NCBI GenBank assembly: GCA_904063045.1
Contig: CAJFCJ010000198.1
Coordinates: forward strand, 1-32,399
Direction of reading: 5' to 3'
DNA from: Dimorphilus gyrociliatus
Taxonomy: Eukaryota > Animalia > Annelida
Length of the DNA stretch: 32,399 nucleotides
In this document: piece by piece, positions 1 to 25,917 of the stretch
Layout: each line of letters opens with the position of its first letter
How positions within the stretch are numbered: position 1 is the stretch's first letter
Program-made: the position numbers and the translations under genes
The notes under the pieces: model-generated
What the model was told of the DNA's origin: nothing
Seen by the model: the letters and a program-made list of their open reading frames with translations, nothing else
The model's database searches: none

Positions 1-750
1 CACAGGTTGATTTTTCGTAACGTTTTGCTGCTTTTAGCAATACATCCACATTTAAAGTGTGTTAATTTTCCTGCAAAAGCTACGATACAATCTGTTTTGA
101 CTGTAACATCAAATTCATTTAAAACAGTTTCTTTACTTAAGTCCAGAGGATGGAATAAGGATTCATCATAACCTTTAATAAAATCATACGTTTATTGCTC
201 GGCACTTTATACAGTTGTGCTGTTTCAGCATCTACTTGTTTAGAGATGGTAATATATCATCTTAGCATTAGCCACCCTTCTATAGCAAAACTATGGTATC
301 TGTCATCTTTTACAAAGCCTTTTAAATCCGTACATGGGCAGTAATAACATATGGCACACCTGTTAACATAGCAGCATAAGGTGTAATCCATAAATGCTGT
401 GCATGGATAATATCTGGTTTAAAAGTATCTACTTCCTCTTGAACCACTTCTATATATTTATCCATGTAAGTCTTCATTTGATCATCTGATAATTCATAAT
501 AAGTTGTATTATTCTTGGATGGGTTGTAAAACATGGAAAATTGAAATCCACTTCAGGCTTTACTGTATTTGGTCCCTTAAACTTAATGACTCTTGATTCA
601 AATCCTTTATATGTCTTGTCTTCGTGTTCTGGATAAATGATTTTAACCTTATGGCAAAACTTACTAAAGCCTTTGCCAAATTTTTGGTGTACACGCCACT
701 ACAGTCCCTCCAATGGAAAATGATTATAACAAAATCTTCACACTCATCAT
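1..750 (-). CDS. GT4 glycosyltransferase copy 1, 5' part only (runs off the window edge); apparent frameshifts are 1-bp deletions
   Basis: Matches 6656-7415 except for many single-base deletions, mostly in homopolymers; ORF 322..534 matches the middle of the intact protein. Confidence 0.8.
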
Positions 751-1245
751 CCTTACTTGTAATTTATGAGAAATTTCTTGCTATAACAATAGAAACTTGT
801 TATAAAGTAGTCAGCATAAATATGCTACAAAGTAAATTTTGATAGTCAATATTAAAAGTCTTTTTCTTTGCACACATACATTTGTCAACTATAATCTCAC
901 AATAGAGAAGTAGTATTGAGCCAGGATTGTACTATTCAAAAGAGTTTTGTGGCATTGTGTGGTAATTATATAAGATTTGTTAAAGATTTTTCAAAAATCA
1001 TTAAACTAGGATAAAAGTTGTTCCCTGCTAGCTGACTGTTGCTGAACATTTGTTTCTTTTGCTCCTAACACTGCATAGCCAGAATGTTGTCTTTTTTCTT
1101 TTCTTTTAAAGAAAAAATATGTGCTACAATATGGAAAATCTTTTACTGGAGGAGAAACCTGTGTATATCTGTATGATCAGAATCAGAATCAAGTTTTTTT
1201 CTTTCAAATTATTATCATAACTCCATATATCATATATTTTCTTCA

Positions 1246-2747
1246 GGGTCAGGTGCAAACGTACTGGGTGCGAATGTACCAAGGCAGGTGTGAACATACC
1301 AGGTACATTCCCACCCTTTTCCTCTTTCTTTTATTTATTGATTTTTCATCAAATGGTTTTGTTAATAATAGATATATATGTATATACTCAGACTGTAAAA
1401 GTAATATTTTATCAATGTGAAGTATTATTTAAAAATATTAAATATTGTTGAAAAGTGAAATGGCAGGAAGTTCAATAGTGAAGGTGGTGAAATAAACTTT
1501 CACTTTGGACAGCATATACTTTCAAAGGTAAGCTGTATGTCCTGAATAAATTTGGACAAAGTGCTCTTTGTAGATTTTGAACAGGTAAATATTTAAAGCT
1601 TTTTAACTAGATTTTGATGCAAAATATTACAATTTAATATATTTTCTTTAATAACAAATTATTTCAATATTTGCTATAAACAAAATTTCAGCCATTTTGA
1701 ATATTTGGAAAGGAAGTGATTTTTTTAATATCAAGTGAATTTGTTTCTGTTGAAACAACATGGTTTCAAAGTGCAACAATTGTGATTCAAAAATTTATGG
1801 AAGGCAAAAATATTTGAAATGCTGCCTTTGTGAGAATCTTATCCATAGAAAATGTTCAGGTACATCAGTTTTCAAATATGATTTAGGCAACTATCTTTTC
1901 TTAACACATTGACACAGAAACACCTAGCATACCTGTTTGCACAAGATGTAACAAAGAAAATGTACTGTTAGCCTTAAGAAGTTAACAAATCTGGAAATTG
2001 ATCAATACAAAGAAAGTAATAAGACTTCAATGATAACAGAAGTGATCCTGCTGAGGTTAAAGATTCAACATTTGATTATGAAAGTCCTCGGCAATCAGAA
2101 AACCAATCAATGGATGTAGAAGGAACTGATGAAAATACAGAAGATGAAAATGACTCAATCAGGAGGAATGATTTTGAGATTGTACAAGGAGGAAGCAGAA
2201 AAGGACATGACATTTTATTGAATGATGGATATTCTTTTGTTGTTAAACATAAAACACTTACAACAACAATTTGGGTATGCAGTGTGAGAAGTAAGAAAAA
2301 AGATGTGTAGCTAGAATAAGACAAAATGGAAGTATATTTATTAAAGGCAATCTGGAACATAATCACAACAGAAAACCTAATTTGGAAGTAGATGTTAAAG
2401 TAAAAACTGATGTAAAAACTATTTGCAAAAGTGATAACAAAGCATCTGGAAGAAGCATTGCTGAAAAATTTCTATTATCATATGAACCTAATGCTAAATG
2501 TCTTCCTGATATCAATTACTTAAAAAGGATGGCAAACTCAAACAGACAAAAATTCAGGCCAGTTGAACCAAAAGTGTATAATTTCAACTTGAACACAACT
2601 TTTTTACCTGATGAATTTCTCCAGAAAGACATTTGTGAAAATGGAGAAAGAATCTTAATTTTTGCAACAAACCATCAGCTGAACTTATTATCCAAATCCA
2701 ACTACTGGTATATTGATGGTACTTTCCAAATTGTTAAGGATCCATTC
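1246..2747 (+). mobile_element. 5' half of a MULE (TIR remnant plus PHD-FLYWCH-partial DDE), copy 1, indel-rich
   Basis: Same sequence as 7920-9431. ORFs 2110..2310 and 2382..2819 carry the FLYWCH-like GYSFVVK...WVCS segment and YWYIDGTF. Confidence 0.85.
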
Positions 2748-3015
2748 TGGTTACTTTTCAATTTTGATGGCTATTCTACCTTCCAAATCAATGTATTGTG
2801 GCTTCATTTGAATTGTTGAATTCAATTTTTCAGGTGTATCAAAGTTGTTACATCTGTTCCAATACCATATTGTGAACACTCACTGTTTGTTTGTTTTAAT
2901 TAATTCATTATGGGTGTGTTATTATGGTTGTATTTAAATATACTTTGTGAATAAAATTGTAATTATTTTATCATATTATTAGTTGATTCTTTTAGATTTA
3001 GATATATAAAACTAG

Positions 3016-3225
3016 GTCATCATCCATTGATTGGAAGAGTTTTGTCTTAAAAAATACTTTTATATATGCCCCATATTGGCTTCAATAATGTTGAAGTCTG
3101 GGCAGTTAGCTGGCCATGAATGCAATGTTTCAACTTTCTTTCTCTTTAGGTATTCCTTTGCTCTGGCTGCTGTATGACAGCTGGGCCCATCGTGTTGGAA
3201 AATTTTCCCTCTATAATAATTGAAT
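3016..3225 (-). mobile_element. Tc1-like transposase catalytic fragment (DD35E), copy 1
   Basis: Same as 9700-9910: KIFQHDGPSCHTA...WPANCPDFNIIE. Confidence 0.8.
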
Positions 3226-3230
3226 GCAAA

Positions 3231-3680
3231 TATAGGCAAAAAGTCCCAGCCACCTTGTAAAATTTTTTGTTTTGATATTAAGCTATGCTGAATAGCTACT
3301 TTGAATTGGTAATAATAATGATTAATATGTATAAACTAATGTCCTTTACGAAAAATGATCAAAAAATTGTTTTTCTTTTATAAAATCCTGTTTTAGTAAA
3401 TACATCTCGAAAAAAGGGGTTAGTTAAAAATGAGTCACCATCTATTTAATCAAAAAAAGGGGGTTAAGCTGCATAAATCAAATAGGAAAGTATTTTATTA
3501 TAATTATATCTTTGGTTTTTCAAAAAAATAATGGTCATTGATAAAAAATTTGTTATTTGGTTGTTGAAAAATGCCAAGAAGGGCTATCATTGAACAAAAT
3601 TACCAAAATGTTTACAATTTCTAGCTTCAGTGCCCAATATATCTGGAAAATGTTTCAATTGCATCATACAATTGAAGATT
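3231..3680 (+). mobile_element. Tc1-like 5' end (TIR, leader and first ~45 codons), copy 1, joined to LRR sequence
   Basis: Reverse complement of ~20673-21125. Homology to the Tc1 ORF ends at ...HHTIEDL. Confidence 0.88.
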
Positions 3681-4810
3681 TGAAAGTTGGCCTATCATTA
3701 ATTTTTAAACAACTACTCATTTCATCAAATTCATTACAAAAGATCAATTTATGTTATTGTGATTTAGGCAAGAACAACTGTGAAACTCTATCAAATCTGC
3801 TTTCAAACTGTTCAAAAATTGAAAAAGTTAATTTAAGTTGGAATCCAAATGTTGAACACTTTTTACCTAAAATTTGCCAAGCACTTTTAATATCGTCAAT
3901 TGGACTCAAAGCTATAAACTTTTGCAATTGTAATTTGGATGGGAATAGTATTAAGAATGTTGCAGATTTATTAAAGAAATGTTGTTCTTTACAAAAAGTT
4001 GACTTTTCATTGAATAAAGATTTAAAAGACAGCTTGCCTACTATTTTGGATGGACTCTACAATTGTTGTAATACTCTAGCAGAAATTTATTTAAAAAGTT
4101 GTCTTTTAAATGGAAGTATGGCCAGAGAAATTGGTAATTTTTTAAATAACTGCCATAAAATTGAAAAGATCAATTTATCATTTAATGACAATATGGAAAA
4201 TGGATTTTTTTATATATGTAAACATCTACACAACTCTTCAAATACTCTAAAAGAAAATACAACAATATCAGAACAAATATTAAGGAATATTGCTGACACA
4301 TTAAAATCAGTGAAACAGCTGATAAAGATTGATTTCAAAGGCTGCAATTTAGAAGAGGAACAATGTAGAAAGATTGGAAAGCTTTTCTAAAGTTGCTCTA
4401 AAATAGACACAATCAACTTGGCATGGAATGTTCAGATGGGAGAAGGATTATTTAACATTTGTAAAGGACTCATCCAATCGTCAAGCTGTTTAAAAGAGAT
4501 AAATTTCGGCTGTTGTAATTTAAACAATGGGCAATGTAGACATATTGGAAACCTTTTTAAAGAATGCGCCAAGCTAGAGACAATCTACCTGACAGGAAAT
4601 CATACAACAGGCAATGGACTATTCTATATTTGTGCACAACTTCTTCATTTGTCAAATACTTTAAAATGCCTCAACTTTACAGAATGTAATTTGAGCGAAG
4701 ACCAGTCTAAAATAATAATTAACTTGTTTAAACACTGTTCAAAACTTAAAAGAATTTCTCTGGAACGGATATGGCATTGCGGAAGTGATCTTTTTGAACT
4801 AAGCAAATAG
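3681..4810 (+). pseudogene. RNI-like/NLR-type leucine-rich-repeat gene fragment with one in-frame nonsense codon (TAA 4388-4390), copy 1
   Basis: ORFs 3557..4390 and 4418..4810 are in the same frame. Alternating ~28-aa LRRs (e.g. LQKINLCYCDL / IEKVNLSWN / LKAINFCNCNL / LQKVDFSLN). No native N-terminus. Confidence 0.85.
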
Positions 4811-4894
4811 GTTGTTTAATTACACTGCTCTTAAATATTTTAATTATTCTTCTAATATTCCTGGTGATTGTTTAAAATAGTTTAGAACTAGAAA

Positions 4895-6194
4895 CTCATT
4901 TACTCAATAGATATTCTTTAAACAAAATACTGGCATTTTGTTGATTAATTTCTACTGAAATTACATTTCTTAAGACTACTTGTGGACGAATTTGAAAGGT
5001 TCTATTTGTGTGAGTACTTTGGTGCATTGATAAATGATTGGAAAGGACGAATACTGTTCTGAAGAAGGAGAAATTCCTACAATTACAATACAACAAAGTA
5101 CAATTTTGTTCAATAATTTATGAAATTGATATCAATCATCCAAGGAGTTACATTATAGAGGGGAGTAGGAATCTTGTCAAAATTTTCTTTTTAGCATCTT
5201 TTGATAAATATTGAATTCATAATATTCAAAAAACACTATTTGAAAACAGACCTAATCCTCAGTCTAGGCCTAGCATACTCTAAAAGTAATCAAAGTGCTA
5301 ATTTTCCAAAATCACTAGAAATATTGTTCCTACCCCTGCAACGAGTCACATGTGATAAGGAGAAGTGGAAAATGAAGAAAACTGAAAGTGAGAAAATGTT
5401 TTAAAAAGATATTTTGTGTGCAGTTTTTATTGAATCTAAACAATTTATGCTGTATATATAAGAGAGAGGTTGAAATGTGAACAGAGAGTGACAAGCATCT
5501 CTCACAAAATAATAAAAACAAACAGAAAAATACTTTTACAATAGATTTAAGTGTTTTAAAAAGTAAGAAAACTACTTTTTTATACTAACTGCCAAGCTAC
5601 AACTTTTTCAACAGCTATACATGATTGTTACAATTGTGCTATTGCAATACCATTAGACTGTAAAATAGAAATGGATATCTAAAGTCCAAGTATTGATAAT
5701 TCACTATATCTAAGTGCACAAAAATTCTAAAAATATGTTTGTTAAAAGGCTGCGTTGGTCTTTAAAATGGTGGAAAATGCCAAATTATTAAAAATTCCAT
5801 TGTTTAGTGGTAATAATTGAATAATGAATTACAGAGCAATCGAACAATTTCTGTCATTATTGAAAAGTTTTTATACACATTTAAATTGCCTCATGAATTA
5901 AATTATTAATTCAAAATGTAAATTAATCAATGAAAACATATCAAAAATCCTTTAGAATATTGGTTCAGTTATAAACATCACTGGTTGTACTTTGTTGTTT
6001 TGAAATTGGAGGAATTTCTGGTTTCTTACAACTGTAAGCATTCTTTCCAATCATTTGCCAATTTGCCAAAGTACTCACACAAATAGAACCTTTAGAATTC
6101 GTCCACAAATAGTCTTAGCAAATGTAATTTTGGTAGAAATTAATCAGCAAAACACAAGTATTTCATTTAAAGAATATGTATTGAGTAAAATGAG
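4895..6194. repeat. Diverged inverted repeat pair, arms 4895-5103 and 5985-6194 with a ~880-bp spacer
   Basis: Hand alignment gives ~33 mismatches and 1 gap over ~210 bp (~84%). Shared core aaaggttctatttgtgtgagtactttgg. Confidence 0.85.
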
Positions 6195-6209
6195 CAATTA
6201 CCTACAGTA

Positions 6210-7415
6210 TTACATACATAAAATTTCTTTATATAATGTTTCTACAGCTTTGATTGAATGTTCTAATGAGAAACCCTTTACTGCATATTCAGCACAGTAG
6301 GCACGTCTAGCTGCTTTATCGCTGTGTTTAAGTTCTTCCATAATGGCATCAGCCAGTTCTAAATCATCTTCTACTTGAACCAGACGACCTACTTTGCTAT
6401 CAATAAAATCTGGTAAACCACCTTGGTTAGTACCCACTACAGGTGTGCCACAAGCAAGGGCTTCAATTGCTACTAGACCAAATGGTTCTGTACGAGAAGG
6501 CACAACACTTACATCTGCAATATTGTACATTTTAACTAATGTCTCTTGATTAACGTGACCTAAGAAGTATACATGTTCAAGGTCTAAATCTTCTTTCATA
6601 CGCTTTAACACACCATAGAGTTCACCATTACCTGCAATAATTGTCATTACTTTACCACAGGTTGATTTTTCGTAACGTTTTGCTGCTTTTAGCAATACAT
6701 CCACACCTTTAAAGTGTGTTAATTTTCCTGCAAAAGCTACGATACAATCTGTTTTGACTGTAACATCAAATTCATTTAAAACAGTTTCTTTACTTAAGTC
6801 CAGAGGATGGAATAAGGATTCATCATAACCATTTAATAAAATCATACGTTTATTGCTCGGCACTTTATACAGTTGTGCTGTTTCAGCATCTACTTGTTTA
6901 GAGATGGTAATAATCATCTTAGCATTAGCCACCCCTTCTATAGCAAAACTATGGTATCTGTCATCTTTTACAAAGCCTTTTAAATCCGTACCATGGGCAG
7001 TAATAACATATGGCACACCTGTTAACATAGCAGCATAAGGTGTAATCCATAAATGCTGTGCATGGATAATATCTGGTTTAAAAGTATCTACTTCCTCTTG
7101 AACCACTTCTATATATTTATCCATGTAAGTCTTCATTTGATCATCTGATAATTCATAATAAGTTGTATTACTTCTTGGATGGGTTGTAAAACATGGAAAA
7201 TTGAAATCCACTTCAGGCTTTACTGTATTTGGTCCCTTAAACTTAATGACTCTTGATTCAAATCCTTTATATGTCTTGTCTTCGTGTTCTGGATAAATGA
7301 TTTTAACCTTATGGCCAAAACTTACTAAAGCCTTTGCCAAATTTTTGGTGTACACGCCACTACCAGTCCCCTCCAATGGAAAATGATTAACTAACAAAAT
7401 CTTCACACTCATCAT
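6210..7415 (-). CDS. GT-B fold family 4 (GT4) glycosyltransferase, 401 aa, intronless, bacterial type (BshA/RfaB-like group)
   Basis: N-terminal KILLVNHFPLEGTGSGVYTKNLAKAL (Gly-rich acceptor-domain loop); DIIHAQH; VITAHGTDL (cf. BshA TLHGTD); FAGKLTHFKG; EX7E motif EPFGLVAIE; PVVGTNQGGLPD. Confidence 0.93.
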   Translation of the reverse strand: MMSVKILLVNHFPLEGTGSGVYTKNLAKALVSFGHKVKIIYPEHEDKTYKGFESRVIKFKGPNTVKPEVDFNFPCFTTHPRSNTTYYELSDDQMKTYMDKYIEVVQEEVDTFKPDIIHAQHLWITPYAAMLTGVPYVITAHGTDLKGFVKDDRYHSFAIEGVANAKMIITISKQVDAETAQLYKVPSNKRMILLNGYDESLFHPLDLSKETVLNEFDVTVKTDCIVAFAGKLTHFKGVDVLLKAAKRYEKSTCGKVMTIIAGNGELYGVLKRMKEDLDLEHVYFLGHVNQETLVKMYNIADVSVVPSRTEPFGLVAIEALACGTPVVGTNQGGLPDFIDSKVGRLVQVEDDLELADAIMEELKHSDKAARRAYCAEYAVKGFSLEHSIKAVETLYKEILCM

Positions 7416-7919
7416 CCCTTACTTGTAATTTATGAGAAATTTCTTGCTATAACAATAGAAACTTGTTATAAAAGTAGTCAGCATAAATATGCTACAAAGT
7501 AAATTTTGATAGTCCAAATATTAAAAGTCTTTTTCTTTGCACACATACATTTGTCAACTATAATCTCACAATAGAGAAGTAGTATTGAGCCAGGATTGTA
7601 CTATTCAAAAGAGTTTTGTGGCATTGTGTGGTAATTATATAAGATTTGATAAAGATTTTTCAAAAATCATTAAACTAGGATAAAAGTTGTTCCCCTGCTA
7701 GCTGACTGTTGCTGAACATTTGTTTCTTTTGCTCCTAACACTGCATAGCCAGAATGTTGTCTTTTTTCTTTTTTCTTTTAAAGAAAAAAATATGTGCTAC
7801 AATATGGAAAAATCTTTTACTGGAGGAGAAACCTGTGTATATCTGTATGATCAGAATCAGAATCAAGTTTTTTTCTTTCAAATTATTATCATAACTCCAT
7901 ATATCATATATTTTCTTCA

Positions 7920-9431
7920 GGGTCAGGTGCAAACGTACCTGGGTGCGAATGTACCCAAGGCAGGTGTGAACATACCCAGGTACATTCCCACCCTCTTTCC
8001 TCTTTCTTTTATTTATTGATTTTTCATCAAATGGTTTTGTTAATAATAGATATATATGTATATACTCAGACTGTAAAAAGTAATATTTTATCAATGTGAA
8101 GTATTATTAAAAATATTAAATATTGTTGAAAAGTGAAATGGCAGGAAGTTCAATAGTGAAGGTGGTTGAAATAAACTTTCACTTTGGACAGCATATACTT
8201 TCAAAGGTAAGCTGTATGTCCTGAATAAATTTGGACAAAGTGCTTCTTTGTAGATTTTGAACAGGTAAATATTTAAAGCTTTTTAACTAGATTTTTGATG
8301 CAAAATATTACAATTTAATATATTTTCTTTAATAACAAATTATTTCAATATTTGCTATAAACAAAATTTCAGCCATTTTGAATATTTGGAAAGGACAGTG
8401 ATTTTTTAATAATCAAGTGAATTTGTTCTGTTGAAACAACATGGTTTCAAAGTGCAACAATTGTGATTCAAAAATTTATGGAAGGCAAAAATATTTGAAA
8501 TGCTGCCTTTGTGAGAATCTTATCCATAGAAAATGTTCAGGTACATCAGTTTTCAATTATGATTTAGGCAACTATCTTTTCTTAACACATTGACACAGAA
8601 ACACCTAGCATACCTGTTTGCACAAGATGTAACAAAAGAAAATGTACTGTTAGCCTTAAGAAGTTAACAAATCTGGAAATTGATCAATACAAAGAAAGTA
8701 ATAAGGACTTCAATGATAACAGAAGTGATCCTGCTGAGGTTAAAGATTCAACATTTGATTATGAAAGTCCTCGGCAATCAGAAAACCAATCAATGGATGT
8801 AGAAGGAACTGATGAAAATACAGAAGATGAAAATGACTCAATCAGGAGGAATGATTTTGAGATTGTACAAGGAGGAAGCAGAAAAGGACATGACATTTTA
8901 TTGAATGATGGATATTCTTTTGTTGTTAAACATAAAACACTTACAACAACAATTTGGGTATGCAGTGTGAGAAGTAAGAAAAAAAGATGTGTAGCTAGAA
9001 TAAGACAAAATGGAAGTATATTTATTAAAGGCAATCTGGAACATAATCACAACAGAAAACCTAATTTGGAAGTAGATGTTAAAGTAAAAACTGATGTAAA
9101 AACTATTTGCAAAAGTGATAACAAAGCATCTGGAAGAAGCATTGCTGAAAAATTTCTATTATCATATGAACCTAATGCTAAATGTCTTCCTGATATCAAT
9201 TACTTAAAAAGGATGGCAAACTCAAACAGACAAAAATTCAGGCCAGTTGAACCAAAAGTGTATAATTTCAACTTGAACACAACTTTTTTACCTGATGAAT
9301 TTCTCCAGAAAGACATTTGTGAAAATGGAGAAAGAATCTTAATTTTTGCAACAAACCATCAGCTGAACTTATTATCCAAATCCAACTACTGGTATATTGA
9401 TGGTACTTTCCAAATTGTTAAGGATCCATTC
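7920..9431 (+). mobile_element. 5' half of a MULE: TIR remnant 7920-~7995 and transposase exons 8441-8540 and 8599-9431 (PHD, FLYWCH, first catalytic Asp), truncated after KDPF
   Basis: Spliced MVSKCNNCDSKIYGRQKYLKCCLCENLIHRKCS/ETPSIPVCTRC. Colinear with the intact MULE up to WYIDGTFQIVKDPF, then unrelated sequence. End-to-ATG distance is 521 bp versus 529 bp in the intact element. Confidence 0.88.
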
Positions 9432-9699
9432 TGGTTACTTTTCAATTTTGATGGCTATTCTACCTTCCAAATCAATGTATTGTGGCTTCATTTGAATTGT
9501 TGAATTCAATTTTTCAGGTGTATCAAAGTTGTTACATCTGTTCCAATACCATATTGTGAACACTCACTGTTTGTTTGTTTTAATTAATTCATTATGGGTG
9601 TGTTATTATGGTTGTATTTAAATATACTTTGTGAATAAAATTGTAATTATTTTATCATATTATTAGTTGATTCTTTTAGATTTAGATATATAAAACTAG

Positions 9700-9910
9700 G
9701 TCATCATCCATTGATTGGAAGAGTTTTGTCTTAAAAAATACTTTTATATATGCCCCATATTGGCTTCAATAATGTTGAAGTCTGGGCAGTTAGCTGGCCA
9801 TGAATGCAATGTTTCAACTTTCTTTCTCTTTAGGTATTCCTTTGCTCTGGCTGCTGTATGACAGCTGGGCCCATCGTGTTGGAAAATTTTCCCTCTATAA
9901 TAATTGAATG
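9700..9910 (-). mobile_element. Tc1-like transposase catalytic fragment (DD35E), copy 2
   Basis: ORF 9744..9938: FQHDGPSCHTAARAKEYLKRKKVETLHSWPANCPDFNIIE; 35 residues between D and E. Confidence 0.82.
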
Positions 9911-9914
9911 CAAA

Positions 9915-10365
9915 TATAGGCAAAAAGTCCCCAGCCACCTTGTAAAATTTTTTGTTTTGATATTAAGCTATGCTGAATAGCTACTTTGAATTGGTAATAA
10001 TAATGATTAATATGTATAAACTAATGTCCTTTACGAAAAATGATCAAAAAATTGTTTTTCTTTTATAAAATCCTGTTTTAGTAAATACATCTCGAAAAAA
10101 GGGGTTAGTTAAAAATGAGTCACCATCTATTTAATCAAAAAAAGGGGGTTAAGCTGCATAAATCAAATAGGAAAGTATTTTATTATAATTATATCTTTGG
10201 TTTTTCAAAAAAATAATGGTCATTGATAAAAAATTTGTTATTTGGTTGTTGAAAAATGCCAAGAAGGGCTATCATTGAACAAAATTACCAAAATGTTTAC
10301 AATTTCTAGCTTCAGTGCCCAATATATCTGGAAAATGTTTCAATTGCATCATACAATTGAAGATT
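9915..10365 (+). mobile_element. Tc1-like 5' end joined to LRR sequence, copy 2
   Basis: Same as 3231-3680; homologous to the end of the element at 19532-21128. Confidence 0.88.
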
Positions 10366-10972
10366 TGAAAGTTGGCCTATCATTAATTTTTAAACAACTA
10401 CTCATTTCATCAAATTCATTACAAAAGATCAATTTATGTTATTGTGATTTAGGCAAGAACAACTGTGAAACTCTATCAAATCTGCTTTCAAACTGTTCAA
10501 AAATTGAAAAAGTTAATTTAAGTTGGAATCCAAATGTTGAACACTTTTTACCTAAAATTTGCCAAGCACTTTTAATATCGTCAATTGGACTCAAAGCTAT
10601 AAACTTTTGCAATTGTAATTTGGATGGGAATAGTATTAAGAATGTTGCAGATTTATTAAAGAAATGTTGTTCTTTACAAAAAGTTGACTTTTCATTGAAT
10701 AAAGATTTAAAAGACAGCTTGCCTACTATTTTGGATGGACTCTACAATTGTTGTAATACTCTAGCAGAAATTTATTTAAAAAGTTGTCTTTTAAATGGAA
10801 GTATGGCCAGAGAAATTGGTAATTTTTTAAATAACTGCCATAAAATTGAAAAGATCAATTTATCATTTAATGACAATATGGAAAATGGATTTTTTTATAT
10901 ATGTAAACATCTACACAACTCTTCAAATACTCTAAAAGAAAATACAACAATATCAGAACAAATATTAAGGAA

Positions 10973-11100
10973 GAGTATGGGAAAAAACGTCCTTGGGAAA
11001 AAACGTCCCTGGGAAAAAACGTCCCAGGGTGGGAAAAAACGTCCCAGTGTGGGAAAAAACGTCCCAAGGTTAGGAAAAAATGTCCCAAGGTTGGGAAAAA
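10973..11100 (+). repeat. Left TIR: 5 perfect and 2 degenerate copies of GGGAAAAAACGTCC
   Basis: Repeat starts at about 10979, 10995, 11011, 11031, 11051, 11072 and 11093. Confidence 0.92.
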
Positions 11101-11297
11101 CAAGTAGTGGGAAAAGATATTTGAATTTTAAAAAAGATTGCTCTATTTTGGGAACCAATGGCAATATACTGAGAATATAATAATTAATAATGAATATATG
11201 TTTATTAAAATGTATTAAAAATGAAAAAAGCTAAGAATGTTATACAAAGTTTAAAAGTTACTAGAATAAAGTATAAAGTATGTTAAGACACTGAGAA

Positions 11298-13296
11298 TTA
11301 TTTTGAATAGATTAATGCAATCTTCTGCAAGAGGACAGCAGATGTAATCATTCCCAATTTGTATTCATCCCAAACAGCAAATACTTGCTTCTGCTTCTGG
11401 ATGACACTTTTCTTCTGATACTTCTTTAGCCTTTTTTCTGATAGAAGTTTCTCTACAACTGGAATAAGACTTGATTCCTGTTTTAAAATATCTATGAGCA
11501 TATAAAATGACCCTTTTGCAGGAGTCTTTTCATTTATTCTTCTGTGCCATCCTTCAACATCATTGTTGGTCCTGATGGCAAGACCAAATACAGACCAACA
11601 ATTTGGTGTCCAAATTGAATGCTTAATCCAAGTACTTTCAATGTATTGGAAAAAATCCAAAAATTCATTTCTCTCAAAGGCCTCATCTTTTAGCATGTAG
11701 AAACTGTTTAGAATGGCTTCATCTGGAAGAAAAGGTAATGCCAAAACTTGTTTCAGCAGTCCTGCCTTCTTCTTTTCCATATTATATTGTTGTGTGTATC
11801 CCAAATTCTACAATAATTTAATAATAAGGCCAAGCACTGAATTTAAATATAAGCTTACTTGAATTTTTCTGTAGACAGCTTGTGTCCAATGGAAGACACA
11901 ACCTTGAATAGGAATATTAGGGTAAACTGAGTTAAGAGCACTCCATATACCTAATTCAAAATCAACTACAAATTTGTCAGGTTGAAAACCATTTGTCAAT
12001 TTTTGAATCTCCTTTTGATAAGATGAAGTTAATGAAACAGAATTAAGCAACCAAATCATACTTACTTTAAGAATCATTTTGTACACTTTTTTTTTCTTTG
12101 ATGTTAAAAAAGCAAATGCTAATGGAATTTGTTTTGCTTCTCCATCATTTTTAATAAAAGAATGAACAGAAAAAAGCTGTACAAATGGATCCTTCACAGC
12201 CTTGAAAGTGCCATCTAAATACCATACTTTACTTTTACATAATAAAGACAACTGGTGCTTAGAAGCAAATAGTAAAACTCTTTGATTTCTTACAACAATA
12301 TCACTTTGAAGAAAATCATCTGGTATAAATGTTGTATTAAGTTCAAAATCAATTTCGTTTGGTTCTTTAGGCCTTGATTTTTGCCTATTGATATTGGCTA
12401 ATCTCCTCAGATTTTCCAGTTTTGGTAGGTTATTTTCACTTTTATTTAAATTAATTAATAGATCTTCAGCAATTGCTCTTCCAGATGACTTGATGTCTGC
12501 ATTAGAGATTGCTCTCAATTCTTTTCTAGCAGAAATATTCACAATAAGGCTTTTCCTTTTGTTATGATTGTGTTCATGTTTACTCTTTATGAAAATATTT
12601 CCTTTTTGTTGAATAATAACTGGACATTGAATATTCTTATTTCTAACAGAACATCTCCAGATGGTTCTCTTGTGACTTCTAGATTTTATATTAAAAGCAT
12701 AGCCATTGTTGGTCAAAATATCTTTCCCTTTTTGACTTCCACCAATAATAATATGAAATTTGTCTGAGCTTTCCATATTCTCATTATTTTCAGTTTCATT
12801 TTCATGCAATAAATTTTCCTCCATATTAGAAGTATTGCTAACTTCTTTAAGACTACAATTGTCTTTAACCATATTATTATGAGTACAACTCAGAGCAGCT
12901 TTTACAATAGGATCATCATTGATCACATCTGATAAACTAATGAGACAATATCTTTCACTCAAACTTTTGCATGAAGAACACTTATCATCTTTCATTTCTG
13001 TAATATTAAGCAAAGTTAAATAAATGTATGTTTTACATAGTAAATATCACCTTTACAGATATGATGACAAAGTGAACATGTAGTTTCTTGAATCCTGAAC
13101 TTTTCTGCACAATTATTGCAAAATACTCTTTCAGATTCTAAATTGAAAATGAAAAAAGTGAATAATTTAATAAAAACATATAAAGAGACAGACCTTTGAT
13201 GCATTTGGCATGGACATAATCTTGGCAGTCATTGCATTTCATCTTTCTCTGTCTGCCATAAAATCTTTTATTACAATTAATACAAACAGGTGCCAT
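11298..13296 (-). CDS. MULE transposase, predicted 594 aa, 5 exons (13296-13194, 13137-13051, 12997-12066, 12011-11859, 11807-11298): PHD finger, FLYWCH, DDE
   Basis: GT-AG introns of 56, 53, 54 and 51 bp give one stop-free frame of 1785 nt. Motifs: CINC..CNDC..HAKC..CNNC (PHD); GYAF..WRC..HNH (FLYWCH); WYLDGTF (D1), VVDFE (D2), CVFH (CxxH), RTNNDVEGWH (E). Confidence 0.88.
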
Positions 13297-13709
13297 TACT
13301 AAGTTTCTGCAAAAATAAATTCACTTTCAACTATCAAATATGGCTGCCTATACAAAAATTATAAATAATAACTCACTGGAAAGAAGTGTTCTTAAACAAT
13401 GTATAATCTTGTAATATTCAATAAACTAAATCAATACCAGAGTTTCAATGCTTAAAAAACAAATTAGCCTGAAAATATGCCAAGAAATGCAAAATTTATC
13501 TTTCACTTACAGACAAGACAAGGAAATAACTCATTTCTCTTTTAATAGCATTACATAATTCAGAGAAAACTGGTAAAAACATCACAATACATATCCCTTT
13601 CTTCAAAAATATTAATATTTATTCTATAAATGAAATAAACAGCAAAGAGAAAAACATTTCTGATTATAAGTATAAATAATTATGCCAAGTATATCTTTAG
13701 CCAGGCATA

Positions 13710-13825
13710 GGACGTTTTTTCCCAACAATTAGGACGTTTTTTCCCAACAATTAGGACGTTTTTTCCCGCCCTGGGACGTTTTTTCCCAGGGACGTTTTTT
13801 CCCAAGGACGTTTTTTCCCGACCCC
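13710..13825 (-). repeat. Right TIR: 6 copies of GGACGTTTTTTCCC
   Basis: Repeat starts at 13710, 13732, 13754, 13774, 13790 and 13806. Confidence 0.92.
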
Positions 13826-14441
13826 ATTAAGGAATATTGCTGACACATTAAAATCAGTGAAACAGCTGATAAAGATTGATTTCAAAGGCTGCAATTTAGA
13901 AGAGGAACAATGTAGAAAGATTGGAAAGCTTTTCTAAAGTTGCTCTAAAATAGACACAATCAACTTGGCATGGAATGTTCAGATGGGAGAAGGATTATTT
14001 AACATTTGTAAAGGACTCATCCAATCGTCAAGCTGTTTAAAAGAGATAAATTTCGGCTGTTGTAATTTAAACAATGGGCAATGTAGACATATTGGAAACC
14101 TTTTTAAAGAATGCGCCAAGCTAGAGACAATCTACCTGACAGGAAATCATACAACAGGCAATGGACTATTCTATATTTGTGCACAACTTCTTCATTTGTC
14201 AAATACTTTAAAATGCCTCAACTTTACAGAATGTAATTTGAGCGAAGACCAGTCTAAAATAATAATTAACTTGTTTAAACACTGTTCAAAACTTAAAAGA
14301 ATTTCTCTGGAACGGATATGGCATTGCGGAAGTGATCTTTTTGAACTAAGCAAATAGGTTGTTTAATTACACTGCTCTTAAATATTTTAATTATTCTTCT
14401 AATATTCCTGGTGATTGTTTAAAATAGTTTAGAACTAGAAA

Positions 14442-15741
14442 CTCATTTACTCAATAGATATTCTTTAAACAAAATACTGGCATTTTGTTGATTAATTTCT
14501 ACTGAAATTACATTTCTTAAGACTACTTGTGGACGAATTTGAAAGGTTCTATTTGTGTGAGTACTTTGGTGCATTGATAAATGATTGGAAAGGACGAATA
14601 CTGTTCTGAAGAAGGAGAAATTCCTACAATTACAATACAACAAAGTACAATTTTGTTCAATAATTTATGAAATTGATATCAATCATCCAAGGAGTTACAT
14701 TATAGAGGGGAGTAGGAATCTTGTCAAAATTTTCTTTTTAGCATCTTTTGATAAATATTGAATTCATAATATTCAAAAAACACTATTTGAAAACAGACCT
14801 AATCCTCAGTCTAGGCCTAGCATACTCTAAAAGTAATCAAAGTGCTAATTTTCCAAAATCACTAGAAATATTGTTCCTACCCCTGCAACGAGTCACATGT
14901 GATAAGGAGAAGTGGAAAATGAAGAAAACTGAAAGTGAGAAAATGTTTTAAAAAGATATTTTGTGTGCAGTTTTTATTGAATCTAAACAATTTATGCTGT
15001 ATATATAAGAGAGAGGTTGAAATGTGAACAGAGAGTGACAAGCATCTCTCACAAAATAATAAAAACAAACAGAAAAATACTTTTACAATAGATTTAAGTG
15101 TTTTAAAAAGTAAGAAAACTACTTTTTTATACTAACTGCCAAGCTACAACTTTTTCAACAGCTATACATGATTGTTACAATTGTGCTATTGCAATACCAT
15201 TAGACTGTAAAATAGAAATGGATATCTAAAGTCCAAGTATTGATAATTCACTATATCTAAGTGCACAAAAATTCTAAAATATGTTTGTTAAAAGGCTGCG
15301 TTGGTCTTTAAAATGGTGGAAAATGCCAAATTATTAAAAATTCCATTGTTTAGTGGTAATAATTGAATAATGAATTACAGAGCAATCGAACAATTTCTGT
15401 CATTATTGAAAAGTTTTTATACACATTTAAATTGCCTCATGAATTAAATTATTAATTCAAAATGTAAATTAATCAATGAAAACATATCAAAAATCCTTTA
15501 GAATATTGGTTCAGTTATAAACATCACTGGTTGTACTTTGTTGTTTTGAAATTGGAGGAATTTCTGGTTTCTTACAACTGTAAGCATTCTTTCCAATCAT
15601 TTGCCAATTTGCCAAAGTACTCACACAAATAGAACCTTTAGAATTCGTCCACAAATAGTCTTAGCAAATGTAATTTTGGTAGAAATTAATCAGCAAAAAC
15701 ACAAGTATTTCATTTAAAGAATATGTATTGAGTAAAATGAG
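14442..15741. repeat. Second copy of the ~210-bp inverted repeat pair
   Basis: Same as 4895-6194, offset by 9547. Confidence 0.85.
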
Positions 15742-15756
15742 CAATTACCTACAGTA

Positions 15757-16962
15757 TTACATACATAAAATTTCTTTATATAATGTTTCTACAGCTTTGA
15801 TTGAATGTTCTAATGAGAAACCCTTTACTGCATATTCAGCACAGTAGGCACGTCTAGCTGCTTTATCGCTGTGTTTAAGTTCTTCCATAATGGCATCAGC
15901 CAGTTCTAAATCATCTTCTACTTGAACCAGACGACCTACTTTGCTATCAATAAAATCTGGTAAACCACCTTGGTTAGTACCCACTACAGGTGTGCCACAA
16001 GCAAGGGCTTCAATTGCTACTAGACCAAATGGTTCTGTACGAGAAGGCACAACACTTACATCTGCAATATTGTACATTTTAACTAATGTCTCTTGATTAA
16101 CGTGACCTAAGAAGTATACATGTTCAAGGTCTAAATCTTCTTTCATACGCTTTAACACACCATAGAGTTCACCATTACCTGCAATAATTGTCATTACTTT
16201 ACCACAGGTTGATTTTTCGTAACGTTTTGCTGCTTTTAGCAATACATCCACACCTTTAAAGTGTGTTAATTTTCCTGCAAAAGCTACGATACAATCTGTT
16301 TTGACTGTAACATCAAATTCATTTAAAACAGTTTCTTTACTTAAGTCCAGAGGATGGAATAAGGATTCATCATAACCATTTAATAAAATCATACGTTTAT
16401 TGCTCGGCACTTTATACAGTTGTGCTGTTTCAGCATCTACTTGTTTAGAGATGGTAATAATCATCTTAGCATTAGCCACCCCTTCTATAGCAAAACTATG
16501 GTATCTGTCATCTTTTACAAAGCCTTTTAAATCCGTACCATGGGCAGTAATAACATATGGCACACCTGTTAACATAGCAGCATAAGGTGTAATCCATAAA
16601 TGCTGTGCATGGATAATATCTGGTTTAAAAGTATCTACTTCCTCTTGAACCACTTCTATATATTTATCCATGTAAGTCTTCATTTGATCATCTGATAATT
16701 CATAATAAGTTGTATTACTTCTTGGATGGGTTGTAAAACATGGAAAATTGAAATCCACTTCAGGCTTTACTGTATTTGGTCCCTTAAACTTAATGACTCT
16801 TGATTCAAATCCTTTATATGTCTTGTCTTCGTGTTCTGGATAAATGATTTTAACCTTATGGCCAAAACTTACTAAAGCCTTTGCCAAATTTTTGGTGTAC
16901 ACGCCACTACCAGTCCCCTCCAATGGAAAATGATTAACTAACAAAATCTTCACACTCATCAT
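15757..16962 (-). CDS. GT4 glycosyltransferase copy 3, 401 aa, protein identical to 6210..7415
   Basis: The ORF track translations are identical. Confidence 0.93.
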   Translation of the reverse strand: MMSVKILLVNHFPLEGTGSGVYTKNLAKALVSFGHKVKIIYPEHEDKTYKGFESRVIKFKGPNTVKPEVDFNFPCFTTHPRSNTTYYELSDDQMKTYMDKYIEVVQEEVDTFKPDIIHAQHLWITPYAAMLTGVPYVITAHGTDLKGFVKDDRYHSFAIEGVANAKMIITISKQVDAETAQLYKVPSNKRMILLNGYDESLFHPLDLSKETVLNEFDVTVKTDCIVAFAGKLTHFKGVDVLLKAAKRYEKSTCGKVMTIIAGNGELYGVLKRMKEDLDLEHVYFLGHVNQETLVKMYNIADVSVVPSRTEPFGLVAIEALACGTPVVGTNQGGLPDFIDSKVGRLVQVEDDLELADAIMEELKHSDKAARRAYCAEYAVKGFSLEHSIKAVETLYKEILCM

Positions 16963-17466
16963 CCCTTACTTGTAATTTATGAGAAATTTCTTGCTATAAC
17001 AATAGAAACTTGTTGTAAAAGTAGTCAGCATAAATATGCTACAAAGTAAATTTTGATAGTCCAAATATTAAAAGTCTTTTTCTTTGCACACATACATTTG
17101 TCAACTATAATCTCACAATAGAGAAGTAGTATTGAGCCAGGATTGTACTATTCAAAAGAGTTTTGTGGCATTGTGTGGTAATTATATAAGATTTGTTAAA
17201 GATTTTTCAAAAATCATTAAACTAGGATAAAAGTTGTTCCCCTGCTAGCTGACTGTTGCTGAACATTTGTTTCTTTTGCTCCTAACACTGCATAGCCAGA
17301 ATGTTGTCTTTTTTCTTTTTTCTTTTAAAGAAAAAAATATGTGCTACAATATGGAAAAATCTTTTACTGGAGGAGAAACCTGTGTATATCTGTATGATCA
17401 GAATCAGAATCAAGTTTTTTTCTTTCAAATTATTATCATAACTCCATATATCATATATTTTCTTCA

Positions 17467-18963
17467 GGGTCAGGTGCAAACGTACCTGGGTGCGAATGTA
17501 CCCAAGGCAGGTGTGAACATACCCAGGTACATTCCCACCCTCTTTCCTCTTTCTTTTATTTATTGATTTTTCATCAAATGGTTTTGTTAATAATAGATAT
17601 ATATGTATATACTCAGACTGTAAAAAGTAATATTTTATCAATGTGAAGTATTATTTAAAAATATTAAATATTGTTGAAAAGTGAAATGGCAGGAAGTTCA
17701 ATAGTGAAGGTGGTTGAAATAAACTTTCACTTTGGACAGCATATACTTTCAAAGGTAAGCTGTATGTCCTGAATAAATTTGGACAAAGTGCTTCTTTGTA
17801 GATTTTGAACAGGTAAATATTTAAAGCTTTTTAACTAGATTTTTGATGCAAAATATTACAATTTAATATATTTTCTTTAATAACAAATTATTTCAATATT
17901 TGCTATAAACAAAATTTCAGCCATTTTGAATATTTGGAAAGGACAGTGATTTTTTAATAATCAAGTGAATTTGTTCTGTTGAAACAACATGGTTTCAAAG
18001 TGCAACAATTGTGATTCAAAAATTTATGGAAGGCAAAAATATTTGAAATGCTGCCTTTGTGAGAATCTTATCCATAGAAAATGTTCAGGTACATCAGTTT
18101 TCAAATATGATTTAGGCAACTATCTTTTCTTAACACATTACACAGAAACACCTAGCATACCTGTTTGCACAAGATGTAACAAAAGAAAATGTACTGTTAG
18201 CCTTAAGAAGTTAACAAATCTGGAAATTGATCAATACAAAGAAAGTAATAAGGACTTCAATGATAACAGAAGTGATCCTGCTGAGGTTAAAGATTCAACA
18301 TTTGATTATGAAAGTCTCGGCAATCAGAAAACCAATCAATGGATGTAGAAGGAACTGATGAAAATACAGAAGATGAAAATGACTCAATCAGGAGGAATGA
18401 TTTTGAGATTGTACAAGGAGGAAGCAGAAAAGGACATGACATTTTATTGAATGATGGATATTCTTTTGTTGTTAAACATAAACACTTAACAACAATTTGG
18501 GTATGCAGTGTGAGAAGTAAGAAAAAAGATGTGTAGCTAGAATAAGACAAAATGGAAGTATATTTTTAAAGGCAATCTGGAACATAATCACAACAGAAAA
18601 CCTAATTTGGAAGTAGATGTTAAATAAAAACTGATGTAAAAACTATTTGCAAAAGTGATAACAAAGCATTGGAAGAAGCATTGCTGAAAATTTCTATTAT
18701 CATATGAACCTAATGCTAATGTCTTCCTGATATCAATTACTTAAAAAGGATGGCAAACTCAAACAGACAAAATTCAGGCCAGTTGAACAAAGTGTATAAT
18801 TTCAACTTGAACACAACTTTTTTACCTGATGAATTTCTCCAGAAAGACATTTGTGAAAATGGAGAAAGAATCTTAATTTTTGCACAAACCATCAGCTGAA
18901 CTTATTATCCAAACCAACTACTGGTATATTGATGGTACTTTCCAAATTGTTAAGGATCCATTC
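17467..18963 (+). mobile_element. 5' half of the resident MULE, copy 3 (indel-rich toward the gap)
   Basis: ORF 17989..18348 starts with the PHD exon; the sequence matches 7920-9431 with scattered 1-bp deletions. Confidence 0.85.
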
Positions 18964-19056
18964 TGGTTACTTTTCAATTTTGATGGCTATTCTACTTCCA
19001 ATCAATGTATTGTGGCTTCATTTGAATTGTTGAATTCAATTTTTCAGGTGTATCAA

Positions 19057-19057
19057 N
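19057..19057. other. Assembly gap/join (single N) where the tandem array stops
   Basis: The N lies at the point equivalent to 9525; unrelated sequence follows. Confidence 0.9.
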
Positions 19058-19531
19058 AAAACAACAAAGTCAAGTTCAATCAATTAAAGCTACTCATTGC
19101 TTCTATTTTTCCCCTTTTTCTTTTTCCTCCCTCTCTCTCTAATTGACATGAACAGACAAAATGTCATTAATAAACTACATCAGCAAAATACAAATTCATT
19201 CTATTCTATTGTTAAAATATGCAACTGTTACATGACTTTTTTATTTTAATATTATTGAATAGAATAGAAGGATGGGCAAGACTTTCCTATAATTTAAGTT
19301 TCTATTCTGTTGAAGAAACAGACACATATATTATTGGAAAACTTATTGCCCTACAAAAATCTAAGAGAACAAATATCATTATCCCCAAAACATTTAATAA
19401 GTTAATCTATAAATATCTCTTCTTTGAAAGCTTTGAAAAGACAAAAAAAACTTATATTCACATTTATAAAATAAAATTTTCAAAAAGAGCTTTTTGCCTA
19501 ACTCTGAATAGTGTCCATTTTCATCATACTT

Positions 19532-21128
19532 TAAAAAAATTTTTAGTTTTGATATTAAGATATACAAAATAACTAGTTTTAATTGGTAATAATAATGATT
19601 AATATGTATAAACTAATATCCTTTACAAAAAATTTTCAAAAACTTGTTTTTCTTTTATAAAATGCAGTTTTAGTAATTATACCTCGAAAAAAGGGTTAGT
19701 TAAAAATGAGTCACCATCTATTTAATTAAATATTTTACTTTAAATCTACCTTAGGACACTCCTTAACAAATTATATAAATGAATTATTACAATATTTTAT
19801 GAAAATATAGTAATAATACTTTTAGACCTTTTTAATACTTAGTGTGGCCAACTTTATTGAAATGACACAGTTGTAGCCTCATTCTAACACTGTTAAACAA
19901 TTTTTCAACATATTCAGTTGGAATATTGTCAAATTCTTGCTGTATTACCCTCCATAGATCATCAACATGTGTGCACAGATGTTTACCAACCCTTCCTTTT
20001 AGGTATGACCATACATTTTCAATAGGATTTAAGTCAGGACTCTGGGCTGGTCAGTCTTGCTAGTGCCTTAAGTTCTTTTCATTTAGATACCGAAAGGTAC
20101 TCCTAGATGTATAGCATGCAGCACCATCCTGCATGAATACATGGTACCTATTGTAATTCTATAGAAAAGATTTACCAATAATTTCTTGATATTTCTCCAA
20201 ATTTAAATTGCTTTTATATAAATGTATACCTCTGCTGCCATCACTTTTTAAAAAACCCCAAATATTTAGGGAACCATTTGCCTCTTTAAAAGTTTTTTTT
20301 GCATATTTTGCCTTATATCTATTAGTTGGATGCCTCCTGACGAACTGCCAGTGTTTTGGATATAAATCTATCCTTGTCTCATCCAAAAACACAATTGAAT
20401 TAATTTGCTCTGTGCTCCAAGAGAGGAGTCTTTTTACAAAAGTTTATCCTATTTGACAAGTCTTTTTTCTAATAGGGATTTTTTTGCTCCAACATAGCCT
20501 CTCAAGTTATGTTTCCTTAAAACATTCTTACATGTTGATAAGAATATAACTGATGCTAGTTTAGAGGTGGACAAAATTTTTTTTTGCTCCCCAGAAATGA
20601 TTTCTGCTAGATATAAGGCATAATATTCTCTCATCTTGCTTGCTTAATTTGACTGGTCTGCCACATCTGGGTAAATCTTCAATTGTATGATGCAATTGAA
20701 ACATTTTCCAGATATTTTGGGCACTGAAGCTAGAAATTTTAAACATTTTGGCAATTTTATTCAATGATATCCCTTCTTGGTGTTTTTCAACAACCAAATA
20801 ACAAATTTGTTTATCAATGACCATTGTTTTTTTGAAAAACCAAAGATATAATTATAATAAAATACTTTCCTATTTGATTTATGCAGCTTAACCCCATTTT
20901 TTTGATTAAATAGATGGTGACTCATTTTTAACTAACCCCTTTTTTCGAGGTGTAATTACTAAAACAGGATTTTATAAAAGAAAAACAATTTTTTGATAAT
21001 TTTTGGTAAAGGATATTAGTTTATACATATTAATCATTATTATTATCAATTAAAAGTAGCTATTCAGCATAGCTTAATATCAAAACAAAAAATTTTACAA
21101 GGTGGCTGGGGACTTTTTGCCTATACTG
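19532..21128 (-). mobile_element. Decayed Tc1/mariner-superfamily element (~1.6 kb) with ~200-225-bp TIRs (19532-19726 and 20905-21128); one terminus intact (TA|CAGTATAGG)
   Basis: The two TIRs align over ~195 bp. TA at 21129-21130 abuts a CAGT terminus. The outer ~30 bp of the left TIR is missing. Confidence 0.88.
19832..20824 (-). pseudogene. Tc1-like transposase pseudogene (HTH domains plus D-D35-E) with frameshifts and stops
   Basis: MVIDKQICY..GRP (HTH), FLDET (D1), FMQDGAACYTSR..*QD*PAQSPDLNPIENVW (D2, E). Terminal stop at 19832-19834. Confidence 0.9.
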
Positions 21129-21258
21129 TATATTTTATATAGGCCTTAATTGATTTTATACAGAAATTAAAGCTATTTCTGTATTGTTCATTTAATAAAA
21201 CAATATTAATAAACAGTGATTATACTACTCATCGAAATTTATCACTAATTGAAATTTA

Positions 21259-23200: not shown

Positions 23201-23510
23201 AAACACTTAATGATGCAGTTGATAAAATGTTCATTAAGTTTGAGTACAAAGCACAAAAATTACCAGTTTCCTTGAGAAAATATGACTTTACAAACTTCTT
23301 CTATTCACTCCTTAAGCAATAAATTTTTTTTAAAAACTCCAATGGATATTTCGTTATGGAAGACAATACTTTTTTATACAAAGAAAGTTTTTATTGAAAA
23401 AAAATACATTAAAGCAACAAAGGATATTCTAAAGGCAATTTCTTACTGCCATAGTAACAAATTCACGTCTGAAAACCAACTGACATCTGATAACATATGT
23501 TAAAATGTAA
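23110..23510 (+). pseudogene. Possible degenerate protein-kinase-like relic directly after the LGR TM7
   Basis: Across frames: GKGSL, GYFVME and DILKAISYCHSNK...DNI resemble kinase subdomains I, V and VIa-b in order. No HRD or DFG is seen. Confidence 0.3.
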
Positions 23511-24364
23511 AAATGTCAATTAAAATATTTAAAATTATACAAAATCTAAATTTTTAAACATAATGAGGTTTACAGATAGAATGCATCTTCCAAATCCCAA
23601 TAGGAAAAAAACAAATTTTTCATTGTCTCATAATGAAACTCTAATGAATTTCCAATATTTTCAAATAAAAAACATACCTTTTTTGATTAGTTTATTTTGA
23701 TTAGTTAAAAGAATGAAATTAGTAAAAAAAAATGTCAAAAATAGGTCCTGCACGAAAAATTTCGTCTTTGACTGTTTAGTATCAAATAGTTCTGTATCAA
23801 ATAAACTTTTAGACTATAGTCTCAGTAAACATTTAAAAATATTCATACGTGTAGAATAATGCCATAAAGTAGAATATTTAATTTAACACTTGCAAATTGT
23901 AAGTTTAAAATGTACAGTGGCTGTTTAATTGCAGTACCTACTTCAAATTCAACAGTACTTTTATTTCTTTTTATGCAAAATCAATAATAAGACTCCATGA
24001 TTTGCATGATTCCTTGCAAAATATCGTTTACTACAAACCTTTGTTAATATCGAAGATTACATTACAATCTTTAATCTCATTGCTCTAACTAATTTTACTA
24101 AAAACAGAACAGAAGAATAAGAGAAACTAATGTTGGCTTCCCTAGAAAATGATGGATTAGTAGTGTAATAATGAAATATTGGCAAAGTATTCAATAAATT
24201 TCCCCTTAAGAGTCTATTGGACTCTAGAAAAAAATATTCTTCGGATTCTATGCTTCCAGCTGTACTTTGAAATCTTTTTGGAATTTTTTTAATAAATAAA
24301 AATCTATTTATATTATAAAAACACAGGTTAAAATATCTGATTAATTAGAAGATCATCACTAGAG

Positions 24365-25321: not shown

Positions 25322-25917
25322 TTTAGACTAATTAATTATTTCAGTATTTGTATAATAATATTAATTAAATATCGGATTATCTAGATATGAGTTCTTAGTA
25401 AAAATCAATACTTGTTCTATATCTATAAATGTTACTTTATGTATTTTATGGTGTAAAATGTAAAGGAACTCTATCAATTTTTATTGAACCTAGTAAATAA
25501 TACTGCATCTTTGTGATTCTATTTTGAATTTTTCCCAGTATAAATCTTTAGTTTGTAAAAAAAATCATCTGAATGTTCAGGAATATTTCTTTACCATAAA
25601 ACTAGAATGTGAGGTAATTTTTGGTCAAAATTAATAACCAAACCAACAGCTCCAGTACGATTCATTCCAATTAATCATCCTTTTAATAGTGATAAAATAT
25701 GACAAACTGAAATAAACTTTATAAGATTTTGTTTTTCGCTTATAGCACGAAATTCCTAAGAATTTCGTATAAATTTTATTTGATATTCTTTTGGTCTCTC
25801 ACACCGTTCTATTACATTCACTCAGTATTTTTCAATAGAACTAATAACTTTATATAAACATATTCGCAGTGAAAAAGTTTTTCATTCTCTCTCTCTCTGT
25901 TCACTCTAATTAGAGCT

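Follow-up and report, generated by a model that had tools for sequence, protein, structure and literature searches.

A Clostridia-type family 4 glycosyltransferase gene in a transposon-bearing tandem array of the annelid Dimorphilus gyrociliatus

Bacterium-to-annelid gene transfer is well supported, on the evidence of sequence, for a family 4 glycosyltransferase (GT4) gene in the genome assembly of Dimorphilus gyrociliatus. The gene occurs in a stretch of 32,399 nt, hereafter the window, where it sits on a short foreign segment that is repeated together with surrounding transposon debris. An earlier note on this DNA had proposed horizontal acquisition from bacteria, and we uphold that proposal on three grounds: the nesting of the protein within a Clostridia clade, the footprint of a donor operon attached to the gene, and the sharp breakpoints of the foreign segment.

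The glycosyltransferase and its tandem array

The left part of the window, up to a scaffold gap, is occupied by a tandem array and the GT4 copies that it carries:

1..19056, unstranded: tandem array of 2.9 units of 6,655 bp, each unit combining GT4, transposon debris and pieces of LRR-like ORFs; fills the contig
1..760 (end approximate), minus strand: GT4 copy A, partial, truncated where the contig begins, so that codons 1-253 are present
6210..7415, minus strand: GT4 glycosyltransferase ORF, copy B, intact, 401 aa plus stop
15757..16962, minus strand: GT4 ORF, copy C, intact, DNA-identical to copy B
19057..19057, unstranded: scaffold gap, a single N in the sequence, at the end of the array

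The uninterrupted 401-aa ORF, claimed earlier to encode the same protein twice, is the same in copies B and C in both protein and DNA. Copy A differs from them by indels of 1-2 nt only, with zero substitutions, and because these indels cluster at positions 1-2300 and 18100-19056, its frameshifts are attributed to poor consensus at the contig ends and not to decay. The amplification that had also been claimed is a tandem one of at least two full copies and one partial copy, a number that is a lower bound because the array fills its entire contig and stops at the N. Positions 1-4287 match 6656-10972, and 4279-9526 match 13826-19056; units B and C are separated by 3 true substitutions in 5.25 kb.

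All of the motifs listed in the earlier note were recovered in the protein (KILLVNHFPLEGTGSGVYT at residues 5-23, TAHGTDL at 139-145 and EX7E at E310-E318), together with GKLTHFKG at 230-237, a GK-x4-KG sequence of the diphosphate-binding Lys/Arg-x4-Lys type. The EX7E and Lys/Arg-x4-Lys motifs are invariant across the family alignment. Both Pfam domains score well above their gathering cut-offs (Glycos_transf_1, 2e-36, 125.4 bits vs 26.4; Glyco_transf_4, 5e-19, 69.3 bits vs 28.5), and the AlphaFold model (pLDDT 89.5, pTM 0.86) has a GT-B architecture with two Rossmann-like domains and TM scores of 0.75-0.81 to solved GT4 enzymes. Judged by these profiles and the predicted fold, the encoded protein is a complete retaining GT-B glycosyltransferase of family 4. 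TM scores of ~0.8 were obtained against the sucrose-phosphate-synthase (SPS)-like protein of Leishmania major, a cyanobacterial sucrose-phosphate synthase, BshA and MshA, every one of them a retaining enzyme whose acceptors are small and soluble.

The label "BshA/RfaB-like" that had been attached to the protein proved too specific. Identity with BshA (TIGR03999) was rejected at 106.9 bits vs an NCBIfam equivalog cut-off of 273.7, as was identity with MshA (TIGR03449) at 115.9 bits vs 462.5, and because both scores fall far under their cut-offs the annelid protein is not regarded as an equivalog of either. BshA and MshA, retaining enzymes that make GlcNAc-malate and GlcNAc-inositol-phosphate, share with it the GT-B fold, the EX7E and GK-x4-KG motifs and, by analogy, small soluble acceptors, but only ~22% identity. 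The acceptor of the annelid enzyme is most likely small and soluble, as it is for MshA, BshA and sucrose-phosphate synthases. The best solved match is the L. major SPS-like GT4 (PDB 8UAG, 8VRF and 9DCM; 3e-33 by sequence, TM 0.79-0.81), which differs in having ~24% identity overall, in being ~60 residues longer and in going back to an independent and far earlier acquisition by a protist. Its name appears among Leishmania genes of prokaryotic or lateral origin (PMC4711719). The L. major protein is a second eukaryotic case of a bacterial-type GT4 of this subclass.

Bacterial origin and operon relic

The three best of 3,801 database matches to the GT4 protein share 92% amino acid identity with it (P0001-P0003) and belong to uncultured Clostridia. 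They are followed by matches at 81-83% identity that include Clostridia metagenome-assembled genomes and, further down, by ~65% matches from Helicovermis, Acidaminobacter and other Bacillota. The nearest Atlas clusters are all bacterial or archaeal. In a maximum-likelihood tree, the annelid protein falls with the three 92% matches in a four-row clade (100/100), nested in a 12-row clade (100/100) that takes in the matches at 81-83% and in which all relatives are bacterial. The BLASTp and tree comparison that the earlier note had recommended thus places the protein within a Clostridia clade and in no vertically inherited eukaryotic one.

The 92% relatives lie on long bacterial contigs with genes for TyrRS, a two-component system, a lytic transglycosylase (SLT), GalU and pyruvate:ferredoxin oxidoreductase (PFOR). 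At two of these loci (L001 and L002) the donor-type operon runs from a 411-aa gene of no family through GT4 and a cNMP-binding protein to GalU, an order repeated in an 81% relative. The operon GalU scores 392.6 bits vs a cut-off of 326.8, and since a bona fide GalU adjoins GT4 in the donor operon, UDP-glucose is suggested as the donor sugar of the transferase and is the most likely one. In L001, the protein without a family is encoded at 8785-10020 and the cNMP-binding protein, of 581 aa and with the domain at its C terminus only, at 11229-12974; both flanking genes are conserved beside GT4 and GalU in Clostridia.

The extent of the bacterial-derived DNA in the array was delimited by comparison with these loci:

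1-804, minus strand: bacterial-derived segment, copy A, matching the copy B segment
6195..7470, minus strand: whole bacterial-derived segment, copy B, ~1,275 bp, 87% nucleotide identity to L001/L002
7387..7470, minus strand: 28-codon relic of the operon gene that precedes GT4 in bacteria (its 3' end), read in a different frame and carrying a W-to-stop change
7407..7415, minus strand: start region, ATG ATG AGT and then the GTG that served as start in the bacterial gene
15742-17017, minus strand: bacterial-derived segment, copy C, matching the copy B segment

The 5' edge of the segment lies 55 nt before the ATG, in the terminal 28 codons of the preceding operon gene; the 3' edge lies 14 nt past the stop, just short of the ribosome-binding site of the next gene. 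The annelid fragment thus still holds the end of a Clostridia gene other than the GT4 itself, which reads YNKFLLL*QEISH in the worm vs YNKFLLAWQEISQ in bacteria. An Ala-Trp pair in this stub, invariant in seven of seven bacterial sequences, is Leu-stop in the annelid. A tblastx comparison of the window found no bacterial sequence beyond the GT4 segment and no neighboring bacterial genes.

Set against the Clostridia operon gene, the annelid copy is of equal length and carries the same motifs at 87% nucleotide identity over 1,275 nt, but it is a lone gene whose operon partners are absent and which starts with ATG where the bacterial gene has GTG. The first ATG is found only in the annelid and the second is common to the outgroup locus L003; the second may be ancestral. 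Pairwise divergence from the nearest sampled bacterium is 0.043 at non-synonymous sites (dN) and 0.73 at synonymous sites (dS), and given a dS of this size the nearest sampled bacterium is not taken to be the donor, which would itself be unsampled. A viral vector was considered and rejected, no relative of the GT4 being found in IMG/VR.

Vertical inheritance of a eukaryotic GT4 with a bacterial look is a reading for which no supporting point was found. Among the 3,801 matches, which reach as low as 59% identity, and among the nearest Atlas clusters no eukaryotic sequence occurs, the protein is nested within a bacterial clade, and vertical descent is ruled out by the donor-operon relic attached to the gene; we assign this reading a negligible probability.

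Near position 7447 (minus strand), three substitutions have changed the bacterial GGCATGG to GTTATAG, a change that creates both the relic stop and, 32 nt ahead of the ATG, a site that resembles a splice acceptor in being rich in pyrimidines and ending in AG, and that would be a candidate for splicing in a 5' UTR. Neither an intron nor a clear poly(A) signal was seen, a result that speaks against use of the gene.

Integration among transposons and presence in the animal

As read from the assembly, host DNA adjoins the foreign segment at either end, the breakpoints (6195 and 7470 in copy B) recurring in three units, and the following transposon features surround it:

4279..4287, unstranded: the MULE target site of unit 1, empty
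4895..6194, unstranded: element of 1.3 kb whose 210-bp inverted arms are 84% identical and which abuts the 3' edge of the segment with its right terminus
7920..9503, plus strand: "half MULE" with a MULE-type terminus with sub-repeats at ~7920-7995 and a FLYWCH ORF at 8793-9503
10973..13825, minus strand: FLYWCH-MULE of 2.85 kb, present in unit 2 only, its termini with GGGAAAAAACGTCC sub-repeats

The junction of the 1.3-kb element with the bacterial segment, at 6194/6195, has neither a gap nor a target-site duplication, a hint that the incoming bacterial fragment was joined to the end of a transposon or to a break. Capture of the gene by a Pack-MULE was rejected for this window: the GT4 does not lie between paired MULE terminal inverted repeats, and a search for a second terminus to match was negative. 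The MULE terminus nearby belongs to the half MULE, which is divergent from GT4, begins 450 bp from its 5' edge and is oriented away from it. The complete MULE of unit 2 is flanked by a perfect 9-bp target-site duplication (ATTAAGGAA, at 10964-10972 and 13826-13834), and its jump is, on this reading of the units, younger than the tandem amplification. In the assembly, the GT4 array lies within eukaryotic, transposon-bearing DNA. This agrees with one part of an earlier claim, that the gene is contiguous with transposons; the other part, an animal-type LRR, fared less well, as the "LRR" ORFs reach only sub-threshold Pfam scores.

Reported bacterial genes in animals often turn out to be contamination, and an artefact was weighed here, in which contaminating bacterial DNA, or long reads assembled into a chimera, would leave the gene outside the animal chromosomes. 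In favor of an artefact, the array contig consists of the repeat only, includes zero single-copy host genes, is bounded by the scaffold end and the N, has poor consensus at both ends and is joined to the right-hand side (19058-32399) across the scaffold gap only; moreover, one 2024 run labeled as the same species yielded zero of the sampled GT4 sequence words. The library of that run could have been bisulfite-converted. Against an artefact, just 1,275 bp are bacterial, with junctions identical in all three units and no bacterial neighbor genes, and the segment differs by 13% of nucleotides from the nearest known bacterium. The MULE with its target-site duplication and empty site lies inside the array, and sampled words of the GT4 were found in five runs from two studies, and one of these runs had all words of 6196-7470 and 79% of those of 5900-7800. 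The genome paper, which describes a PacBio assembly, reports four rounds of decontamination. We therefore give an artefact very little credence. Among runs X1, X4 and X6, two are listed at ~1 million letters yet have 88-98% of the sampled words, and such high recovery from small runs may mean that the cassette is high-copy.

A second way in which the annelid might not be the host is that the scaffold comes from another eukaryote in the culture, such as a food organism or protist, the transfer being real and its recipient different. Consistent with this, no protein of the window is matched exactly in the public proteome of the annelid; an exact-sequence look-up of the GT, GPCR and MULE proteins returned no record. 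The transposons speak for the worm instead: the MULE transposase has its best named match in D. gyrociliatus, with bivalve, amphioxus and abalone proteins next, and the genome paper gives Mariner and MULE as the DNA transposons of this species. The scaffold also carries a rhodopsin-type G protein-coupled receptor (GPCR) ORF, and one transposon fragment recurs, 96% identical, to the left and to the right of the gap. A different host is, in our judgment, highly improbable. The GPCR ORF encodes 318 aa at window positions 24365-25321 (Pfam 7tm_1, 3e-18); searches gave neither a relative in the database below E = 1e-5 nor an identical public protein.

Observed-to-expected CpG ratios are 0.62 in the right-hand contig, 0.39 in the GT and just 0.16 in the repeat unit (4279-10972 minus the GT), which has the look of transposon DNA that was methylated for a long time or lost its CpGs in some other way. 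As a candidate host signature of CpG decay, the GT value compares with 0.69-0.75 in its bacterial sisters, with polarized CpG losses numbering 3 vs 4. CpG-poor transposon places like the GT4 setting are described in the genome paper as islands of closed chromatin.

We propose that a single-gene fragment of a Clostridia operon, ~1.28 kb in length, was integrated into the annelid nuclear genome beside transposon ends and that, much later, it was amplified in tandem together with the surrounding transposon debris. The transfer, dated by a relic divergence of ~9%, is on these figures long before the tandem amplification, which has left 0.06% divergence between units. The dead relic beside the gene is taken here, and in the comparison with the ORF below, to record neutral change from the transfer onwards.

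Evolution since transfer and possible roles

Three-point estimates of dN are 0.033 on the annelid branch vs 0.009 on the sister branch, and polarized non-synonymous changes number 24 vs 3. With dS split equally between the branches, omega is ~0.09 in the annelid and 0.025 in the sister. Synonymous sites have reached saturation relative to the outgroups, and polarized synonymous counts were for that reason not used to estimate omega; the non-synonymous asymmetry alone was kept. Post-transfer evolution seems from these comparisons to have proceeded under purifying selection that is relaxed but real, and given this apparent selection the worm probably uses the gene.

The main competing account is that of a real transfer that left a silent passenger, in which the DNA was ligated at transposon ends, copied with the repeat and is too young to have decayed, with no enzyme made. 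Several observations accord with it. The gene is set in a transposon island with the low CpG ratio given above, and it is unannotated in public proteins: a GT-like protein is absent from the D. gyrociliatus proteins of the database, though that proteome is represented. The annelid-branch dN is 3.7 times that of the sister, and in simulations a two-phase model with a neutral phase of ~2% divergence fits the observed omega and leaves the ORF intact with a probability of ~0.4. The identity of copies B and C, for its part, reflects very recent duplication only.

Other observations are harder to reconcile with a passenger. Replacements avoid conserved columns: those with conservation of 95% or more make up 40% of all columns and take only three of the 24 replacements (p = 0.003), a p value that becomes about 0.03-0.07, by our own estimate, when excess replacements only are counted. 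Every invariant residue of the family is kept (127 of 127 invariant columns in a 43-sequence alignment). The adjacent relic has decayed ~3-4 times faster per non-synonymous site (N-site) and has already gained a stop; its four non-synonymous changes in 45 N-sites compare with 24-31 in 949 for the ORF, a difference that is marginal given the small counts (p = 0.03-0.07). At the ~9% neutral divergence seen in the relic, simulated frames stay open in a few percent of cases (k = 80: 0.05). The ATG start where the bacterial gene has GTG points the same way, with its value as proof of adaptation weakened because L003 already has an ATG at the second position. We regard the silent passenger as a possible outcome, on the doubtful side, and we lean modestly towards the view that the GT4 is maintained and probably expressed in the annelid. 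That the gene is still functional in the worm, as the earlier note proposed, is only suggested, by the intact fold and motifs and by selection tests that are no more than marginally significant, and amplification for dosage, proposed in the same place, stays a hypothesis.

The annelid protein has a net charge of -8, up from the -18 of its three bacterial sisters, and many of the 24 polarized replacements are E-to-K, D-to-N or E-to-Q changes or gains of K/R. The shift could stem from directional change or from a G-to-A mutational bias.

A bolder hypothesis holds that the worm has domesticated the Clostridia GT4, with a promoter derived from a transposon, tandem and dispersed amplification selected for dosage, a glycoside otherwise unavailable to animals as the product, and the 10-unit charge shift as an adaptation to the cytosol. 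We consider it rather unlikely in this full form; if it were true, candidate products would be a compatible solute, a thiol precursor or a protective sugar conjugate.

The UDP-glycosyltransferase family of the spider mite Tetranychus urticae is reportedly old, diversified and expressed, with a role in detoxification. The annelid GT4 copies, in contrast to that family, are near-identical. Both are bacterial glycosyltransferases gained by an animal and then multiplied, the T. urticae family being of GT1 and not GT4, and its bacterial origin is given in a passage of PMC13342648 that cites Ahn et al. 2014. Full-text literature searches found no description of the D. gyrociliatus GT4 gene; the gene is unmentioned in the genome paper, and the species in a compendium of metazoan horizontal gene transfer.

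The transfer can be argued here from sequence alone, by virtue of a stub of a bacterial neighbor gene and a later jump of an animal transposon into the array. The host is a laboratory annelid whose genome is very compact and otherwise repeat-poor, and the recently amplified foreign gene offers a tractable system for the establishment of new genes. If the gene is expressed, a lophotrochozoan would have gained a metabolic capability of bacterial origin.
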